A stretch of DNA of 64,000 bases from Euprymna scolopes (Eukaryota): the NCBI GenBank assembly GCA_053919585.1, contig CM132805.1; one strand, 5' to 3'. The notes under the pieces were generated by a model. That model had not been told where the DNA came from, did no database searches, and was given only the letters and a program-made list of their open reading frames with translations. The first letter of the stretch is position 1. Every line of letters begins with the position of its first letter. Below are positions 1 through 46,757 of the stretch, piece after piece. The position numbers were made by a program, and so were the translations under genes.

Positions 1-863
1 GGCTGATCACTTTTAATGCATCCAAAACCAAGCTCCTATCTTTACATCATCAACGCCCTGATCCCCATATGGCATCAATTGAAATGGATGGCTCTTGTCT
101 TGGAGAGGCTCCATATTTTGACAAGCTTCTGGGTGTGACCTTTACTCCTGATTTGAAATGGAACACGTACATCAAGTCTGTTGTCAGGGACGCTGGGAAA
201 ATGGTGGAATCCTTCTACCGCTCCAGAAGATATCTCACTACTGATGCAATTCTCTATCTGTATAAAAGCCAAGTACGTCCAAGGATGGAGTACTGCTGCC
301 ACATCGGGGCAGGAGCTGCTAAAAACAGCCTATCCTGCCTTGACAGAGTACAAAATAGACTTCGTGGCTTAGTGGGGGATACCCTTTTCTCTTCCCTGCA
401 ACCTCTCTCCCACAGAAGAGACGTTGCGAGCCTGTCTTTGTTTTATCGCTATTTCCATGGCAAGTGCTCGTCTGAGCTCCAATCCCTCTTCCTCCCTCGC
501 CAATCTTTCACGAGAAACACCCGTCTGGCTGAAACTACTGTCAACAATTTTCCCCACTCTTTATCTGTGCCTAAATCCAAACGTAGATTCCATGAGCAAA
601 GCTTTTTTCTTAGAACTGCACGCCAGTGGAACTCTCTGTCGCTTGTTTGTTTCCCACCTGACTACAACTTGGACGTCTTCAAGTCCAACATAAACAAACT
701 CCTGACAAAATTCCCCCTTAAGTAAGACACTCTATCAAAACCCCCAATACTAATGATTACTACAATACTATCTCATTGATTACTGTACACGCAATAGCCC
801 TTATCACTGAGTGGCCTTCGGGCCTTGATAAGTGGTGACCTACATGTAAAAAAAAAAAAAAAA
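1..863 (+). mobile_element. 3' end of a CR1/L2-type non-LTR retrotransposon (RT C-terminus, 3' UTR, poly-A), family 1
   Basis: ORF 69-725 has LLGVTFTPDLKWNTYI and LYLYKSQVRPRMEYCCH, typical of the post-RT region of CR1/L2-group LINEs. It ends in a hairpin (800-832) and an A-tail (848-863). Confidence 0.9.
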
Positions 864-1162
864 TACATAAATAACTATTACAGAAACGCCCACTGCTGAT
901 GGGGTGCATTTACTTCCTAAGTTTTTTTAAGATATTTTCAGGATTGCTTCTCTATATAAATAAAATGTTACTTGAGATAATGTTTGGACTGACATTATAT
1001 AAGTGGACATTTTAGGGCACGTTTGATTAATGAGATGTTTCTCGTTTAATTTTTTACTTCATCATCAAGATGTGATCAACCACAAATTTTGTTTGAAGTT
1101 AAATATTTGTAAACAAGTAAATGTCGATCCCCTTTTTATTCAATGTTTTTTTTATTAAACTT

Positions 1163-2702: not shown

Positions 2703-2729
2703 TTCCTGGAATTGTCGCCCGCTATCCTC
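2703..2729 (+). CDS. Cys-rich peptide gene copy A, exon 2 (27-nt micro-exon, (I)PGIVARYP)
   Basis: ttatttttattcttttatacag|TTCCTGGAATTGTCGCCCGCTATCCTC|gtaagt; phase 1-1. The paralogue at 22868-22891 keeps both splice sites and differs by an in-frame 3 nt. Confidence 0.85.
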
Positions 2730-4754: not shown

Positions 4755-5422
4755 TTTTTTTTTTTTTTACAAGCAGTCACTACTTATCAAGGCCCGGGGC
4801 TTACTGTAAAATAAGAGTAAATGAATGTAAGTTGGAAGAGTAGTAATCATTAATGGTGTAGATTGGGTAGAATTTGCATTATTAAAGAGGATGGCTTAGC
4901 AAGAACTTGTTTACATTGGACTTGAAGGCTACAATCTTGTAATCTGCCGGGAAGCAGCCCAATGGAACAGTTTTCCACAGACGTGCAGTCCTAAGAAATA
5001 AACTTTGTTGATAGAATCTTCGTTTAGATTTATGCACAGATAGCGAGTGGGGGAGATTGTTGATATTGATTGTAGCTAGTCGAGTGATTTTGTGAAAGTT
5101 TGGCAAGAGGTTGCGAGTGGGCACTTGCCATGAAAATATCGATAGAATAGAGACGGGCTCACAACGTCTCTTTTGTGGGAAAGAGGTTGCAGAGAAGAGA
5201 AAAGGGCATCACTTACTAGGTTTTGAATCCGGTTTTGGACTCTATTAAAGCAAGATATGGCGCGTCGAGCAGTTCCTGCCCAGATATAGATACAGTATTC
5301 CATCCTAGAATGTACTTGGCTCTTATACAGATAGAGGATTGCATCAATAGTGAGATACCTACTTGAGCGATAGAACAATTCAATCATTTTTCCAGCGATC
5401 TTGGCAACAGATTTGATGTATA
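4755..5422 (-). mobile_element. Degenerate 5'-truncated CR1/L2-type LINE (family 1)
   Basis: Frameshifted ORFs 5076-5387 and 4882-5124 (LYLYKSQVHSRMEYC), with the same 3' tail and poly-T. Matching insertion at 51555-51990. Confidence 0.85.
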
Positions 5423-8999: not shown

Positions 9000-9080
9000 A
9001 TGTCTGCCCACCTCCTAATGGTCATTTGAGTATGCATAATACTCAGAGGTGCTCCAGCTCCTTCGACTGCCAATATCCCT
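9000..9080 (+). CDS. Cys-rich peptide gene copy A, exon 3 (81 nt, (H)VCPPPNGHLSMHNTQRCSSSFDCQYP)
   Basis: ttattttttttattacag|ATGTCTGCCCA...CAATATCCCT|gtaagt; phase 1-1 and open; WAP-like CP...C-x5-C. Same-length paralogue at 52755-52835. Confidence 0.88.
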
Positions 9081-10494
9081 GTAAGTATAAACAATTGAAT
9101 ATACAAAAATGAAAACATTTTATTATAAAAGAGAATTGTTATTTGTTTGAATCTTTGATTGTAAATATGTAGACATAGGAAAACACTTCAGTACAATAAT
9201 AACAATAACCCCTCTATCATCTCCCTCTGCCTTTTCACTCCTCTCGCTCTCTCACTCCCATTTTATTTACGTTTTTACCCCTTCCTCCCACCATCTAATA
9301 CATTAATTAATAACCTAATTGTGCACAAATACTTTATATGGATTTATTAAAAAGTTAACCGGAAGTGAAACAATGGAAAGAGTTCTTTTCATTTTTGTTT
9401 TGTTTCATTCTTTTTTTTTTCTTTGTTTGTCTGTACACTATCTTGATGATAAATTGGTTATACTCTCCATAAAAGAATTCCATGTGCATATATAACAGTT
9501 TCTTCACAATTGCTTCCCATCTATGAAACTGTAAACTACAACGACATCGTCTTCAAAGCCAATGTCAACAAATACTTGTAATAACCCGCACTAATGAGCA
9601 CTCAAAGTTTGTTCCTTCACGTTCAAGTGGAATGGCTTGGGCGACACATATAATCGTCGATGATGATGAGGATGCAAGTACGTGAGTTCTAAAAAACAAC
9701 CACCGAAAAATTGGGGGAAATATTTTACCTGGAACAATAAGACGACGTATTGCGCGCCAAATTAAGATTTCAAACTCATTCACACATATAACATGATCAT
9801 GTATATCGCATGAACGTACATATGGCGTAGTGATTTTCACTAGATTATGGTGATAAGGTCAGCAGTCTTTTCACCACTTCTTTTAAGTACTATTTTCAGC
9901 TGACCATCCAACAATTCTGTGCATTGTTTTCGGTCCTTTCATAATATTCTGCATATAATTAATCCGTATCTTCGAGTGGCTTTCGAGCTTGATTGACGGT
10001 GACATTAATAATGATAAAGTACTACACTGGAATAAATATATTTTTGATTTTCAAATTTAATAATCGTTTTGTTTTTTGGGTTTTTTTTTGTTTTTTGTTT
10101 AAAACTAAATTTGAACTTCCGATGTTATATTTTATTATCATTTTTTTTTCAAGTTGGGGACGGGGCATCCTACCAGATTCCAAACACTCACCTGATAACT
10201 CAGATATTCGAACCGAGAGATATTTTTAAGATTCTGACTGTCACTTTAAGTGTAATTGTTTAAATCCCTCTTGCGCTTGGTTCACCAGGTATGTTTGCCA
10301 GATAGTTTTTTAAATGTTTTTTTCATGAGTCCAATTGCTCCTAAAATAACTAGAATGGTAGAGATCTTTGTAAGATTTCTGTTTCTTTTCATGTCAGACA
10401 TAAGACCTTAGTATTTTGTTATCTTTTACCTTTCAGCTCTTTTTAACTCATCATCATTGGAACACTAACTTCTGAATGTTGTATTTCGTTTCAG

Positions 10495-10562
10495 TTATGA
10501 TTTGCTGTAAATATGGAGGAAGCTTCTACGGATATTGCATGCCATCGTGGCCACTTTCATAG
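10495..10562 (+). CDS. Cys-rich peptide gene copy A, exon 4 (68 nt, (F)MICCKYGGSFYGYCMPSWPLS*)
   Basis: Branch-point-like cactaac at 10463-10469, acceptor tttcgtttcag, phase 1, ends TAG|gtatg. Completes a six-Cys pattern. The paralogue at 26059-26126 has identical length. Confidence 0.88.
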
Positions 10563-11328
10563 GTATGCCATTAATAAAGGCGGAATTTTCGACCAACATA
10601 GCAAATAATAACAGTAAAAACTTATAAAATAAAATTTATTCATCGTAATTTTTTGCTTTATTCTCAAGAAACATTATACAAATAAATCTCATATCTTTTC
10701 ATTCTCCGTAAAATCGGTTGATTTCCAAAAAAAAAATCCCAAAAATGTACAAACGGGAAAAATGGAGCCGAATGTTACTTCTGCGTATTTTGACTTAAAC
10801 AATGAAAACAACGCCATTTTTTAAATTCTCTCAAAAATCAAATATTTGTTTATGAAATAAAATAACATACAAAAACTTCTGATATTTTGCCCCCTCCCCC
10901 AACGCGATCTTTTATAAGAAGTTTCGTGGGGGGGGGGGGTGATTTACATGTAAGGTTTTTTACATATAAAAAAATACTGAATGATGAAATAGAAGATTTT
11001 TGGGAGGGGTTTGGGGTGTAATTCTTTAAATTAACCGAATATATTAAAATTTAGAAAGAATATCAAGAACTATAGTTCGAATTAAATATTATGTAGACTG
11101 TTTTTTAATGGTGATTTTTTTATTACTTTGAATATTATAATTCATATACAATAGTTTACTATCCTTAATGGCATGCTTTATTTAAACTAAAGTTTAAGGG
11201 TAATTCTGTTAGTAGTTTATTTAAAGAGCTCTCAAAGGGGAGATAACTATGGTCATAACATTAAACATGTCTCATTTTTACATACAGTTTATCAATGTTT
11301 CTAACAATGTTTTCCTTCTTTCTTGCAG

Positions 11329-12534: not shown

Positions 12535-12695
12535 ACTAAGCCTCCCCACGATCCCAGTTCTCTTCGCGCTTGTCCAGCGGAGGTCTGGCCAGCGCTCTCT
12601 CCTTGGTCTTGCTATCATCCTTGACCCTTCTCGGCTCTTTGGTATCACTTTTCTATTGGGGGGTGATGAAACAATGGGGGGATGCATGATGGTTG
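12535..12695. repeat. Unclassified interspersed repeat, second copy at 52582-52745
   Basis: gatcccagttctct..gcgcttgtccagc.gaggtctgg...ccttctcggc.ctttggtatcacttt is shared by two non-paralogous positions. Confidence 0.65.
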
Positions 12696-17354: not shown

Positions 17355-17766
17355 GGTATGCGTCATTATGTGTTTGCTGAAGACAAGTTTGAACATATAT
17401 CAACAACTGACAACTTCACTAATCTTATTAAAAGCAATTATTATCTTGAAATGTTAGTAAACTGAAAACGTGATATCGATTTAATCTCCGTAAAATATTT
17501 TTCATAAAACCTATAATAAATATAAAGAAACAATTGAGGTATTAATAGAAAGGGCTTGTCTTTTTATCGTTTGATCTTTTTTTGTGTGTTATTTATTCTT
17601 TTGAATAAATAATTAATTCTCTTTAATTATAAAAGAAAAAGGATTAAATAAATCTATCATTATTTGTTCAAAAAAAAAATACATTGGGTGAATAAAATGA
17701 TATGAGAATAAATCTCCAAGGAGATAATCCTTTGTTATTGAATCCATTCAATAGAAATGATGAAGA

Positions 17767-17774
17767 TATATAAA
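17767..17774 (+). promoter_or_regulatory. Candidate TATA box of copy B
   Basis: TATATAAA about 85 nt upstream of the ATG. Positionally conserved before all three exon-1 copies (16920, 17767, 46630). Confidence 0.55.
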
Positions 17775-17858
17775 CGGCCATGAAACTCAAATCAATCGCA
17801 AACCTTAATGAAGCAGATTGGTCAAATCAATCGCAATGAAGCAGATTGGAAGCAGACA

Positions 17859-17910
17859 ATGAAAAGGAAATTCGTAGCCATTTTGATGATGTTTGTCTTC
17901 TTTTCGATGA
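17859..17910 (+). CDS. Cys-rich peptide gene copy B, exon 1 (signal peptide MKRKFVAILMMFVFFSM)
   Basis: ATG...TCGATGA|gtaagt, 52 nt, phase 1 matching exon 2. Basic N-region followed by a hydrophobic core. Confidence 0.82.
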
Positions 17911-22867: not shown

Positions 22868-22891
22868 TTCCTGGAATTGTCACACATCATC
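22868..22891 (+). CDS. Cys-rich peptide gene copy B, exon 2 (24-nt micro-exon, (I)PGIVTHH)
   Basis: tttattcttttatgcag|TTCCTGGAATTGTCACACATCATC|gtaagt; phase 1-1. Confidence 0.85.
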
Positions 22892-23310
22892 GTAAGTAAT
22901 AATATGTTATCCCCTTTTCTTTACAATCAATTTCTATTTTGTGATAAGCATAATAGATAACAATGTAAACAATAAAATAAGTAAAACTGAAATCCAAATA
23001 CAATGTCATGTCTTCCATTTCAGATTCTAATAAACTTTAGGAATAGATGAATCCATGATTCCCCCTCAGCAATGCGTAAATAAGAGCCGCTGTCTTAATT
23101 TTAAATCCTGTCATAGTATTGATCTTTAAATTGTGAAAATACAAGAAGGGCCCGTAAAAATCCAATCATTTGAGGCCTCCAGCGCCGCTCTGCGACTTCT
23201 AGTTTCGGAGCAGATAGAGTTTGAAAATATGGAGACTGACAGACAGACAGGCTGACAGACAGACATATAGATGTTTATATATTAGATTATAGTATTGATC
23301 TATAATAAAC

Positions 23311-23363
<53 letters not shown>

Positions 23364-23369
<6 letters not shown>

Positions 23370-23788
23370 TGAGAAGGAAAACCGAGAATTAATAAAATAG
23401 TTATCAACGTTTCGTTTCACTATTTCAGGGGACATTATCAGGATTTCGTAGAAAATATGCAGAAGAAAATGATTAAAGACCACATGCGAGTGAAAAAGGA
23501 AAAAATCCTAAAATCTGAACAGAAACTATAAATGTGCGTCAAGCCGAGTCGAATTTTATTTATTTTTTTATTTTTTATTTTATTTATTTATTTATTTATT
23601 TTTTAATTAATTTTTTTTTTTTTTGACGCATGAAAAGGATTTTAGGATTTTTTCCTTTTTTTACTCGCATGTGGTCTATAATCATTTTCTTCTGCATTTT
23701 TCCTACGAAATCCTGATAATGTCCCCTGAAATAGGGACGAAACGTTGATTACTATTTTATAAATTCTCGGTTTTCCTTCTCAAATAAC
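23364..23788. mobile_element. Inverted pair of ~150-bp Penelope-like terminal fragments, each with a minimal hammerhead-like motif
   Basis: 23364-23514 is the reverse complement of 23638-23788. The arm carries aatc-CTGATAA-t-gtccc..gggac-GAAAC-GTT-gatt (23709-23750). Confidence 0.7.
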
Positions 23789-23831
23789 ATAACGTCAACC
23801 ATCACTTGTATTTATTTTTATTTTATTTTTA

Positions 23832-23891
<60 letters not shown>

Positions 23892-24315
23892 GCCCCTTCA
23901 ACGATTCGTAAATAACAGCTGCTGTCTTAATCTTAAAGCCTACTTAAACCATTATATTATTGATGTATAAACTGTGAAAATATTTTTCTAATAATGTCTA
24001 GGAATTTATAAAAGACTATGTGTAGAGTAAAAGTAATAGTATTTTATCCTATTTCCCCTACAATCAAATTCTATAATGATAGGCATAATGGATAACAATG
24101 TAAACAAGGAAATAAGTTAACTTGAATCCAAATATAATCGCATAAAAAGTAGAAGCTGCTGTTCAAGAATAGTTGTGTAAAAAAAAGTATTCAATTTCAT
24201 AATTGAAGAACATAAGTTTGATATGCTGTAAAACTAAATAACTTACCATCCTCTATAATATAAATCTCACCTGTCTGTTTAAATCTGTGTATGTATGTAT
24301 GTATGTATGTATGTA

Positions 24316-24594
24316 CAGGGTGGCCGAAAAGTCCCAGGACACTATACATGTATTTTTAATAAAACACAGTATTTTTTAATGAAACACACAGAAAACATAT
24401 ATATTCAACAAAAAAAGAAAACTTTATTAGAAACAAAGCAGAAAACAACTAGAGTAATTTAGTGGTCTAGGGGATCAGTATGTTGGCCCTCGTTGTTCTT
24501 GCACAATTCCATCATATTTAACAGCATTAAAATATTAAAAATAGAGTGTCCTGGGACTTTTCGGCCAGTGTCCTGGGACTTTTCGGCCATCCTG
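24316..24594. mobile_element. Tc1/mariner-type MITE
   Basis: TIR cagggtggccgaaaagtcccaggacact at both ends (partly duplicated on the right), TA flanks, inserted in a (TATG)n run. Confidence 0.9.
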
Positions 24595-37500: not shown

Positions 37501-40500
37501 CTACTAGCTTTTCTGGGCACTACAAGCGTTTCTGAGCACTACTAGCTTTTCTGGGCACTACTAGCTTTTCTCGACACTACTACCTTTTCTAGACACTACT
37601 AGCTTTTCTGGGCGCTACTAGCTTTTCTAGACAATACTAGCTTTTCTTGGCACTACTAGCTTTTCTCGACACTACTAGCTTTTCTCGGCACTACTATCTC
37701 TTCTGGGCACTACTAGCTTTTCTAGACACTACTAGCTTTTCTAGACACTACTAGCTTTTCTGGGCACTACTAGCTTTTCTCGACACTACTAGCTTTTCTG
37801 GGCACTACTAGCTTTTCTCGACACTACTAGCTTTTCTTGGCACTACTAGCTTTTCTCGACACTACTAACTTTTCTCGACACTACTAGCTTTTCTGGTGAC
37901 TACTAGCTTTTCTAGACACTACTAGCTTTTCTAGACACTACTAGCTTTTCTGGGCACTACTAGCTTTTCTCGACACTACTAGCTTTTCTGGGCACTACTA
38001 GCTTTTCTAGACACTACTAGCTTTTCTAGACACTACTAGCTTTTCTGGGCACTACTAGCTTTTCTGGGCACTACTAGCTTTTCTAGACACTACTAGCTTT
38101 TCTGGGCACTGCTAGCTTTTCTGGGCACTACTAGCTTTTCTAGACACTACTAGCTTTTCTCGACACTACTAGCTTTTCTGGGCACTACTAGCTTTTCAGG
38201 GCACTACTAGCTTTTCTAGACACTACTAGCTTTTCTCGACACTACTAGCTTTTCTGGGCACTACTAGCTTTTCTGGGCACTACTAGCTTTTCTAGAGAAT
38301 ACTAGCTTTTCTGTGCACTACTAGCTTTTCTCGACACTACTAGCTTTTCTGTGCACTACTAGCTTTTCTCGACACTACTAGCTTTTCTGGGCACTACTAG
38401 CTTTTCTGGGCAATACTAGCTTTTCTCGACACTACTAGCTTTACTGGGCACTACTAGCTTTTCTGGGCACTACTAGCTTTTCTAGGAACTACTAGCTCTT
38501 CTGGGCGCTACTAGCTTTTCTCGACACTACTAGCTTTTCTGGGCACTACTAGCTTTTCTGGGCACTACAAGCGTTTCTGGGCACTACTAGCTTTTCTGGG
38601 CACTACTAGTTTTTCTCGACACTACTACCTTTTCTAGACACTACTAGCTTTTCTGGGCGCTACTAGCTTTTCTAGACAATACTAGCTTTTCTTGGCACTA
38701 CTAGCTTTTCTGGGTACTACTAGCTTTTCTAGACACTACTAGCTTTTCTAGACACTACTAGCTTTTCTCGGCACTACTAGCTTTTCTAGACAATATTAGC
38801 TTTTCTGGGCACTACTAGCTTTTCTGGGCACTACTAGCTTTTCTAGACAATACTAGCTTTTCTGGCACTACTAGCTTTTCTGGGCACTACTAGCTTTTCT
38901 GTGCACTACTAGCTTTTCTGGGCACTACTAGCTTTTCTGGGCACTACTAGCTTTTCTAGACACTACTGGCTTTTCTCGACACTACTAGCTTTTCTAGACA
39001 CTACTAGCTTTTCTGGGCACTACTAGCTTTTCTGGGCACTACTAGCTTTTCTAGACACTACTAGCTTTTCTAGACAATACTAGCTTTTGTCGACACTACT
39101 AGCTTTTTTGGACACTACTAGCTTTTCTTGGCAATACTAGCTTTTCTGGACACTACTAGCTTTTTTAGACAATACTAGCTTTTCTGGGCACTACTAGCTT
39201 TTCTGGGCACTACTAGCTTTTCTAGACAATACTAGCTTTTCTGGGCACTACTAGCTTTTCTAGGCACCACTAGCTTTTCAGGGCACTCCTAGCCTTTCTA
39301 GACAATACTAGGTTTTCTGGGCACTACTAGCTTTTCTGGACACTACTAGCTTTTCTGGACGCTACTAGCTTTTCTGTGCACTACTAGCTATTCTGGTACT
39401 ACTAGCTATTTATACTACGTAGTAAACTACTAGGTTCTCAAACAATGTGAGATACTACTCCGTCTTAAACCACTGCTAGACACTACTAACTTCCCAAACA
39501 ACATTAAATACTGCTAGCTTTTCAAAATCTTTACTCTACGAGCTACTCAAACACTGATAGACAATACTAGGACCTCGACCTCCGCGAGACACTACTAGCT
39601 CCTAAATCAACGTAAGACACTACTAGCTTCTGAAACAACGTATGACACCACTAGCTTCTCATGCAATGCTAGACATTACTGGCGTCTTAAACAACGCTAG
39701 ATACTTTTATCTTCTCAAACAACGTTAGACACTACTACTTATCAGATAAAGCTAAACACTAGTAGCTTTTCAAACAAAGCAAAACACTACTATCTCTTAA
39801 ACAACGGCTAGATATCACTAGCGTCCTAAACAACGCTAGACACTTTGAGCTTCTAAAACAACGCTAGACACTTTTCAAAAAATGCTAGAAACTACTAGCT
39901 CAGTGCTGGACACAACAAACTTCTCGGAAAACGTAAGACACTATTAGCTTCCTAAACATAATACTAGCTTCTCAAACACTGCTGGGCACTACTAGCTTGT
40001 AAAACACTGCTAGTCACTACCAGATTCTCAAATGTGAGGCACAGCCAGCAGTTTAAAAACCGCTGACACTGCTAGCTTCTCATACAACACTAAGCACTAT
40101 TAGCTTCTCAAAAAACGCAAGGCACTAAAACTGCTTGAAACTAACAGCTTCTTGAACACTGCTGGACAATAAAAGCTTCTCAAATACTACTAGACATTAC
40201 CAGCTGCTCAAACAACGCAAACACAACTTGGTCACTTACACTTGACCTTACTAGACTCTCAAACTTCGTTAGACACTACTAGCATCTAAAACAACGTTAG
40301 ACACTTCTAGTTTCTTAGATTACGCTAGACGCTGCCAGTTCCTAAAATAATGCTAGACACGCTTACCTTCTCAAAAACTGCTGAACACTTCCACACTTGT
40401 AAAAACTGCTTGGCACTACTCACTACTCAAACAGCGACTGACAGTACTAGCTTCCTAAACAATACTAGACAGTTTTAGCTTCTCAAACAACGCTACGAAA

Positions 40501-40842
40501 TTTTAGCTTCTTACGCACTGCTAGATACCACTAGTTTCTTAAACACTTAAACTAGCTTATCAAACAATGCTAGACACTACTAGATTCTCAAACACTCTAC
40601 GTCACCACAGGCTTCTAAGACAAAGCTAGAATCTCTAAAAGCTTCTCAATTACACTACTAGCTTTTATAACACTGCAAGACACTGGCAGATGTTCAAACA
40701 ACATTGGAGGCTGCTAGTTTCTCAAACAACTCTAGAAACTACAAACTTGTCAAACAACTCTAGAAACTACAAACTTGTCAAACAACGCTAGATACTACTT
40801 GCTTCGTAAACACTGCTAGACACTACTAGCTTCTCAAACAAC
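34580..40842. repeat. Degenerate ~28-bp tandem array enclosing a homogeneous 19-bp array
   Basis: Diverged acactactagcttctcaaacaacgctag units at 34580-34950 and 39400-40842. Confidence 0.9.
34951..39395. repeat. 19-bp satellite cactactagcttttct(ggg/cga/aga), about 234 units
   Basis: Period of 19 read directly; variation concentrated in the last three bases. Confidence 0.97.
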
Positions 40843-40879
40843 GATCGTCGAAATCATTGGTGTCATCCCCGCATTACTC

Positions 40880-46714: not shown

Positions 46715-46757
46715 ATGAAATTCGCAGTCATTTTGATGATGTTTGTTTTTTCGATGA
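46715..46757 (+). pseudogene. Cys-rich peptide gene copy C, exon 1 (signal peptide MKFAVILMMFVFSM); exon intact, gene probably pseudogenised
   Basis: gaaaATG...TCGATGA|gtaagt, 43 nt, phase 1; TATAAATA at 46630-46637. Confidence 0.78.

Follow-up and report, generated by a model that had tools for sequence, protein, structure and literature searches.

Accelerated divergence of a mature-peptide micro-exon between paralogous copies of a gene for a secreted cysteine-rich peptide in Euprymna scolopes

A stretch of 64,000 nucleotides (nt) from the Euprymna scolopes genome, hereafter the window (contig CM132805.1; G000:C23:11346001-11410000 of a 5.9-Gb genome), contains three collinear paralogous segments, A, B and C, which were recovered by comparing the window with itself. 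Segment A carries a gene for a small secreted peptide with six cysteines, and the third exon of this gene, only 81 nt long, is an outlier in divergence between copies A and C. At 26 of its 81 nt the two copies differ (25 within whole codons, plus nt 9001), and the encoded amino acid is altered in 17 of the 26 codons. This excess over non-coding DNA is 2.7- to 3-fold and is confined to the exon, and the genuine anomaly of the locus is this fast exon. The nucleotide and codon counts replicate those of a first-pass annotation made from the sequence of the window, which had claimed that the exons diverge faster than the neighboring introns and had attributed this to diversifying selection on the mature peptide. 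The relevant parts of segment A are as follows:

Segment A: begins upstream of the window and extends to about 13.5 kb (self-comparison).
Gene A exon 1: 1.9 kb upstream of the window start, at locus L034 (located by DNA search with exon 1).
2703-2729, plus strand: gene A exon 2, 27 nt, encoding the end of the signal peptide and the start of the mature peptide (..IPGIVARYP..).
9000-9080, plus strand: gene A exon 3, 81 nt, the fast-diverging exon, with three cysteines in its 26 whole codons, VCPPPNGHLSMHNTQRCSSSFDCQYP.
9081-9150, plus strand: the first 70 nt of gene A intron 3, nearly identical in A and C.
10495-10562, plus strand: coding part of gene A exon 4, ..MICCKYGGSFYGYCMPSWPLS, followed by the stop codon.

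As the background for all comparisons we aligned nine collinear non-coding blocks between A and C and ten between A and B, counting substitutions only. The A-C blocks differ at 355 of 3274 sites (10.8%), with each of the nine lying between 5% and 17%. Against this background exon 3 (9000-9080 in A versus 52755-52835 in C), with 26 differences at 80 aligned sites, deviates strongly (Fisher p = 2.7e-7), and not one of 258 non-coding windows of 80 nt reaches 26 differences, the maximum being 22. Since exon 3 is richer in G+C than its flanks and the genome is AT-biased, we also applied class-specific non-coding rates; the composition-matched expectation is 9.1 differences versus 25 observed over the 78 in-frame nt (Poisson p = 1e-5). 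Base composition accounts for just 9.1 of the 25 differences and was rejected as the cause, and the excess divergence noticed in the first-pass annotation is real. Furthermore, its edge at the donor site is sharp: there are 8 differences in the final 20 nt of the exon and none in the following 25 nt of the intron, with the drop falling within 3 nt of the splice donor. That the excess is bound to the exon and ends at the donor favors a cause tied to the coding sequence. In the adjoining start of intron 3, for which about two substitutions and one indel in ~70 nt had been reported, we likewise find 2 substitutions at 68 aligned sites (2.9%) and one 2-nt indel. This patch is only mildly unusual (p ~0.04, with 3% of windows equally conserved), and the next 107 nt of the intron diverge by 15%.

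Gene A is a real, expressed gene and the intact member of the trio. The transcript evidence consists of RNA contigs from two small public runs (X1 and X2), which match 9000-9080 and 10495-10904 without differences and which are spliced from 9080 to 10495 across an intron of 1414 nt bounded by GT..AG; the 3' untranslated region (UTR) accordingly extends to at least 10904. The 48 nt of RNA contig lying 5' of position 9000 comprise the tail of exon 1 followed by the sequence of 2703-2729, and it is because the overhang ends in the latter that exon 2 could be located there, flanked by cag and gtaagt. A scan of 1.5 kb 3' of each exon-1 copy did not find exon 2, and the best-conserved block shared by A, B and C (1475-1827) was rejected as a candidate for it, being a repeat-like block. 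The four exons together encode a precursor of 73 residues that begins with a hydrophobic signal peptide and yields a mature peptide of ~50 residues, whose six cysteines are spaced C-x16-C-x5-C-x6-CC-x9-C. A contig depth of 122, from a run that comprises 27 million letters, indicates high expression in the sample concerned. Exon 3 of A has zero depth in two polyA RNA runs from other studies, and expression therefore looks tissue-restricted. Among A, B and C a spliced and expressed transcript is shown for A only. No relative turned up among 5.8 billion proteins in a single word-index search, for which the query was a provisional three-exon precursor made without exon 2, and the peptide encoded by exons 3 and 4 has no Pfam match above threshold, its sole hit being to an unrelated family at 17.5 bits versus a cut-off of 25. 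Residues 9-45 of the precursor show three weak protein matches within 110 kb on another contig (G000:C46:149383408-149495638; E 0.18-7.5, 42-44% identity, in open frames of 70 aa), which may either belong to a distant family or reflect hydrophobic sequence in unrelated proteins.

The gene belongs to a larger cluster defined by its first exon. A DNA search with exon 1 and its flanks gave 14 matches at 13 places, all of them on contig C23 between 11.02 and 11.53 Mb, so that at least 12 copies of exon 1 lie within a cluster of ~0.5 Mb, having a TATA promoter and a signal-peptide exon in common. Five of these copies (L035-L039) form a minus-strand tandem array (G000:C23:11467750-11529051), with a spacing of 14.6-17.3 kb and 3-kb flanks that are 92-97% identical. 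Comparison of eight distinct copies over ~1.5 kb on each side of exon 1 revealed two conserved islands, namely the promoter core and exon 1 with the start of intron 1. Both have a mean identity of 90-93% in 40-column windows, with 71-78% in the intron just downstream and no further alignment past ~180 nt of intron 1. The promoter module, ~70 nt with the TATA box, lies at about -180 to -100 from the ATG in L034, L033, L035 and L041-L045; that of copy B is at about 17700-17780 of the window, and the sequence flanking the module is far less conserved across copies. This module may be a shared tissue-specific control element. Exon 1 itself is 92% identical among 6 copies, and on its proportions of nonsynonymous and synonymous differences (pN 0.058 vs pS 0.19) it is under purifying selection. 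The mature-peptide exons are much more sparsely represented: DNA searches found exon 3 and its intron in two genomic copies only, A and C, and exon 4 in three, namely A, B and one ~21 kb beyond the window end, which is most simply taken as that of copy C. A six-frame protein search of the genome gave no convincing paralogues of the mature exons, at a sensitivity so low that it missed C's own exon 3. Because exon 2 is also present next to a distant cluster member, it is ancestral, and C has lost it.

The remaining two segments are composed of the following parts:

Segment B: about 16.5 to 29.5 kb (self-comparison).
17859-17910, plus strand: copy B exon 1, signal peptide.
22868-22891, plus strand: copy B exon 2, 24 nt, one codon fewer than in A.
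26059-26126, plus strand: copy B exon 4, CC-x4-C-x4-C.
Segment C: about 46.2 to 54.2 kb, then a 41-bp satellite to the window end (self-comparison).
46715-46757, plus strand: copy C exon 1, one codon shorter.
52577-52750, plus strand: interspersed repeat resembling a short interspersed nuclear element (SINE), with more than 1375 candidate copies, adjoining copy C's exon 3.
52755-52835, plus strand: copy C homologue of exon 3, with the frame open and without a canonical acceptor at the homologous place.
54236-64000, plus strand: 41-bp satellite, filling copy C's intron 3 for at least 9.7 kb.

Copy B retains an intact promoter core. At the family's start position it has AGG instead of ATG, and another ATG lying in frame 6 nt upstream (17859-17864) gives MKRKF... 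in place of MKF.... Between its exons 2 and 4 (22892-26058) there is neither a homologue of exon 3 nor a candidate for one. In exon 4 a serine codon of A (AGC) is a cysteine codon in B (TGC) and AAC in C, and the simplest view of B's additional cysteine is that it is derived. As for expression of B, 2 of 6 sampled words occur in other small runs, possibly originating from a repeat in its 3' end. Copy C has suffered more extensively: its promoter has an 8-nt deletion adjoining the TATA box, its 5'UTR has a large deletion, and it has no counterpart of A 1828-2970, the segment with exon 2. The SINE, 5 nt from C's exon 3, occupies the place of the polypyrimidine tract and AG acceptor of A. Within the exon the third cysteine codon has changed from TGC to TAC (Cys to Tyr), and in the exon-4 copy assigned to C (L005) a 1-nt deletion changes the last ~eight codons and extends the frame. 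Copy C is thus degenerate and looks non-functional on these lesions. A weak cryptic acceptor inside the SINE would preserve C's frame, a strong acceptor-like site of the SINE being out of frame, and an open frame of 69 codons with one extra cysteine runs in the phase of exon 1 from the weak acceptor through C's exon 3 (52626-52835); exonisation of the SINE in copy C would be speculation. A second, more diverged SINE copy (81%) is seen downstream of gene A at 12535-12692. The cysteine scaffold is not kept across copies, with C lacking the third cysteine and B lacking the three of exon 3 and having one more in exon 4; those kept are two of the three exon-3 cysteines and the CC pair.

Exon 4 was compared between A (10495-10562) and B (26059-26126). 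They differ at 11 of 68 nt (16%), with TGC/TGT as the sole synonymous change; here too the count and the reading frame of the first-pass annotation are correct. Its claim that exon 4 outpaces the introns did not hold, given an A-B non-coding background of 473/3815 (12.4%): versus this whole background p = 0.35, with 24% of non-coding 68-nt windows having at least 11 differences, and the comparison with the adjacent 113 intron nt (7/113) is borderline (p = 0.04). The ratio of nonsynonymous to synonymous rates (dN/dS, or omega) is 2.2 by the NG86 method and 2.9 by maximum likelihood (ML; p = 0.27), and across a range of estimates from 1.7 to 2.9 it is significant only against the nearest intron (p = 0.02). 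When the changes are polarised by the third copy, the A branch has none that is unambiguous, the B branch 7 and the C branch 9.

For exon 3, a ML codon model in which the neutral distance is fixed at the non-coding value of 0.118 gives omega 4.0 (likelihood-ratio statistic 21.6, p = 3e-6). The reading we favor, and to which we give an even chance, is that exon 3 was accelerated through selection-driven diversification soon after duplication and that copy C decayed later. Several observations weigh against it. By NG86 there are 6.0 synonymous differences at 15.5 sites and 19 nonsynonymous differences at 62.5 sites (pN 0.304 vs pS 0.387), which gives a dN/dS of 0.72, and when the distance is left free in the ML model it becomes 0.37 with an omega of 1.2 (p = 0.74 vs 1). 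The silent sites of exon 3 are raised about threefold and the free distance fits slightly better than the fixed one (p = 0.044); the differences are spread evenly over the three codon positions (7/10/8). Exon 3 hence acts as if it had been given three times more time or mutation, with replacement change not above silent change. There is also an asymmetry in direction, with A having G/C where C has A/T 15 times and the reverse 6 times (p = 0.08), the corresponding A-C non-coding counts being symmetric (145 vs 136); the GC content of exon 3 is 38.5% in C as against 50% in A. The skew is a hint that AT-biased change on C's branch makes up a large share of the total, and part of the counted difference may simply be the decay of C. 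With C looking non-functional and B having no exon 3, the trio is shown to hold at most one functional member, and the divergence of exon 4 does not significantly exceed that of non-coding DNA. Finally, exon 3 is a single sequence pair in the genome and exon 4 a trio, both without an outgroup; two or three sequences are too few for site models, and for exon 3 the genome offers no further paralogue. The proposal of diversifying selection on the mature peptide therefore stands in part: the fast exon and the omega of 4.0 under the non-coding clock speak for it, and a dN/dS above 1, the absence of which across more paralogues had been named beforehand as grounds for giving the proposal up, was shown by neither of the methods just described, the 1.2 of the ML model not being significant.

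Exchange between the copies complicates any such clock. Among sites at which one copy differs from the other two, B is the odd one out 24 times in intron 3 at 9666-9837, as compared with 7 for A and 5 for C; at the 3' end of the same intron it is C that stands apart (C 12, B 3, A 1). This heterogeneity is significant for these two blocks (p = 8e-5) and for three blocks (chi-square 37.5, p = 1.4e-7), and as the shares differ between blocks, a single tree does not fit the locus. Judged by these site patterns, the history of A, B and C has involved conversion, unequal crossing-over or a composite origin, which justifies the earlier caveat that intron gene conversion could contribute. It is a further point against the favored reading, as a simple comparison of exon and intron clocks may mislead under such exchange. 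Taken to its limit, the exchange would produce a mosaic without positive selection, in which exon 3 is an older, neutral-like sequence whose flanks were homogenised or swapped by conversion or unequal crossing-over. An ML distance of 0.37-0.43 for exon 3, with an omega of ~1 and even codon positions, speaks for such a history, and the strong heterogeneity of the site patterns fits it as well. However, none of the nine A-C non-coding blocks comes near 0.37, a drop within 3 nt of the splice donor would be rare for the end of a random tract, and the genome has no third copy of the exon or intron that could have served as donor. Sparing the exon alone from conversion would itself require selection, and we consider a mosaic of this kind rather unlikely.

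An explanation in terms of a dead copy dispenses with selection in another way: C would be a pseudogene in which an AT-biased local cluster of mutations arose, for instance through error-prone repair linked to the SINE. The position of the SINE in place of the acceptor, directly next to C's exon 3, fits this, as do the loss of exon 2, the Cys to Tyr change, the promoter deletions, the satellite and the frameshifted exon 4. The omega of ~1, the 15 versus 6 asymmetry pointing to C's branch, and the adjacent or clustered placement of several exon 3 differences are likewise in its favor. Nevertheless, the divergence does not fall away from the insertion; it is still at 8 in the final 20 nt of the exon and then stops at the donor. 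Neutral decay by itself would yield the background rate and not 2.7 to 3 times that rate, and the 26 codons of C contain no stop, which is weak evidence in the same direction. This explanation is accordingly improbable in our estimation, and more so than the mosaic. The contrast might also lie in a slow intron and not in a fast exon, if a conserved functional element such as a splicing enhancer occupied the start of intron 3. The first 68 nt are indeed well below both the background and the 107 nt that follow, and conserved intron ends are reported in conotoxin genes (PMC3862624). Yet exon 3 exceeds the entire 3.3-kb non-coding background and the intron patch is only nominally unusual. The comparison with the whole background rejects a slow intron as the sole cause, leaving room for a partial contribution to the contrast, and we regard this as by far the least probable of the explanations.

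A, B and C form a local triplication inside the ~0.5-Mb cluster. On the favored reading of early selection followed by decay, the family most probably evolves through the birth and death of copies, purifying selection holding its signal exon and promoter and the mature-peptide exons changing far faster than neutral DNA; duplicates would also rearrange, swap segments and decay. At least in the time soon after duplication, selection may have favored changes in the mature peptide, in the manner of effector peptides that serve in venoms, antimicrobial defense or reproduction, and the later degeneration of C would have added AT-biased neutral changes. One may go further and envisage a cephalopod-restricted, conotoxin-like superfamily in which one fixed cassette of promoter and signal exon drives many secreted disulfide peptides, with mature micro-exons that evolve at about three times the neutral rate, with an edge at the splice site. 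We consider so broad a generalization unlikely; in it, the silent excess and the sharp edge would point to exon-targeted mutation, or to selection strong enough to mimic it.

Repeats pervade the window. The stretch 10553-10700 (26117 onward in B) matches an interspersed repeat that has over 1400 candidate copies, with identities of 82-90%, the match starting ~9 nt before the stop codon of A. Because of this match, exon 4 appears to owe its stop codon, AATAAA signal and 3'UTR to the repeat. The same piece has expanded in copy B to a 31-nt minisatellite. Intron 1 of gene A contains an open frame for a reverse transcriptase of a non-LTR retrotransposon (window 1-900; L034 2430-3119), and related retrotransposon fragments at 5001-5420 have heavy cover by repeat-derived RNA reads in runs X7 and X10. 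Elsewhere, a 19-bp satellite of ~234 units with 89% matches spans 34947-39407, for which periods of 38, 57 and 95 were also seen, and it is flanked by related 28-bp repeats (34584-34964 and 39398-40843).

The accelerated-exon phenomenon is already known from peptides of venoms and of immunity; the peptide family described here is new and unannotated. Small hypervariable disulfide peptides are often bioactive, and cephalopods have, to our knowledge, yielded hardly any described examples of the conotoxin or antimicrobial type. Should the acceleration be adaptive, the locus would represent a cephalopod family of secreted peptides that evolves fast and is not yet annotated; the known coleoid secretory toxins are reported to evolve mostly under constraint (PMC4619613). 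The window also displays birth and death within 64 kb, with a working A, a B that has lost an exon and changed its number of cysteines, and a C disrupted through a deletion and the presence of a SINE and a satellite. The silent excess bears moreover on a long-standing question, namely selection versus hypermutation as the cause of "accelerated" toxin exons, which one exon pair cannot settle.

Several known systems resemble this family to different degrees. The cysteine spacing is loosely reminiscent of the WAP domain (PF00095), with a CP... motif, C-x5-C and CC, and in B CC-x4-C-x4-C; membership in the WAP four-disulfide core was rejected, as there are six cysteines and not eight, and no Pfam WAP match at E <= 10. 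A closer parallel is offered by MgCRP-I of Mytilus (PMC4558851), likewise a molluscan family with four exons, a first coding exon that encodes the start of the signal peptide, and a phase-1 intron. Both combine a conserved pre-region with a hypervariable six-cysteine mature part, and both include pseudogenes and broken cysteine arrays. The MgCRP-I array is of the form C-C-CC-C-C and is encoded by one exon, downstream of a pro-region that contains a dibasic cleavage site, and the family comprises at least 67 loci, which allows site models; the array of gene A, in contrast, is C-C-C-CC-C, is divided over exons 3 and 4, and has no KR or RR before the first cysteine.

In conotoxin genes both Dn and Ds climb toward the mature exon, and the introns, the first of them in phase 1, are conserved at their ends (PMC3862624). 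As in these genes, a conserved signal exon with a phase-1 intron defines the present family, whose product is a small disulfide-rich molluscan peptide. It differs in that the mature peptide is spread over two micro-exons (81 and 68 nt) in place of one last exon, and in its C-C-C-CC-C cysteine pattern; we found no sequence similarity between the two. The phospholipases A2 (PLA2) of crotaline snakes (Nakashima et al. 1993, 1995) are, in the summary given in PMC7285919, described as having conserved introns, UTRs and signal exon and faster mature exons, with the three codon positions changing equally and KA close to KS, both above the non-coding rate. The present case differs in concerning an unrelated protein, from a cephalopod, in resting on one exon pair, and in having rearranged or decayed copies. 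The likeness to the accelerated pattern of snake PLA2 and conotoxins drawn in the first-pass annotation is nonetheless borne out: the features described for snake PLA2 recur here as a conserved signal exon and a fast exon 3 with 7, 10 and 8 differences at its three codon positions.
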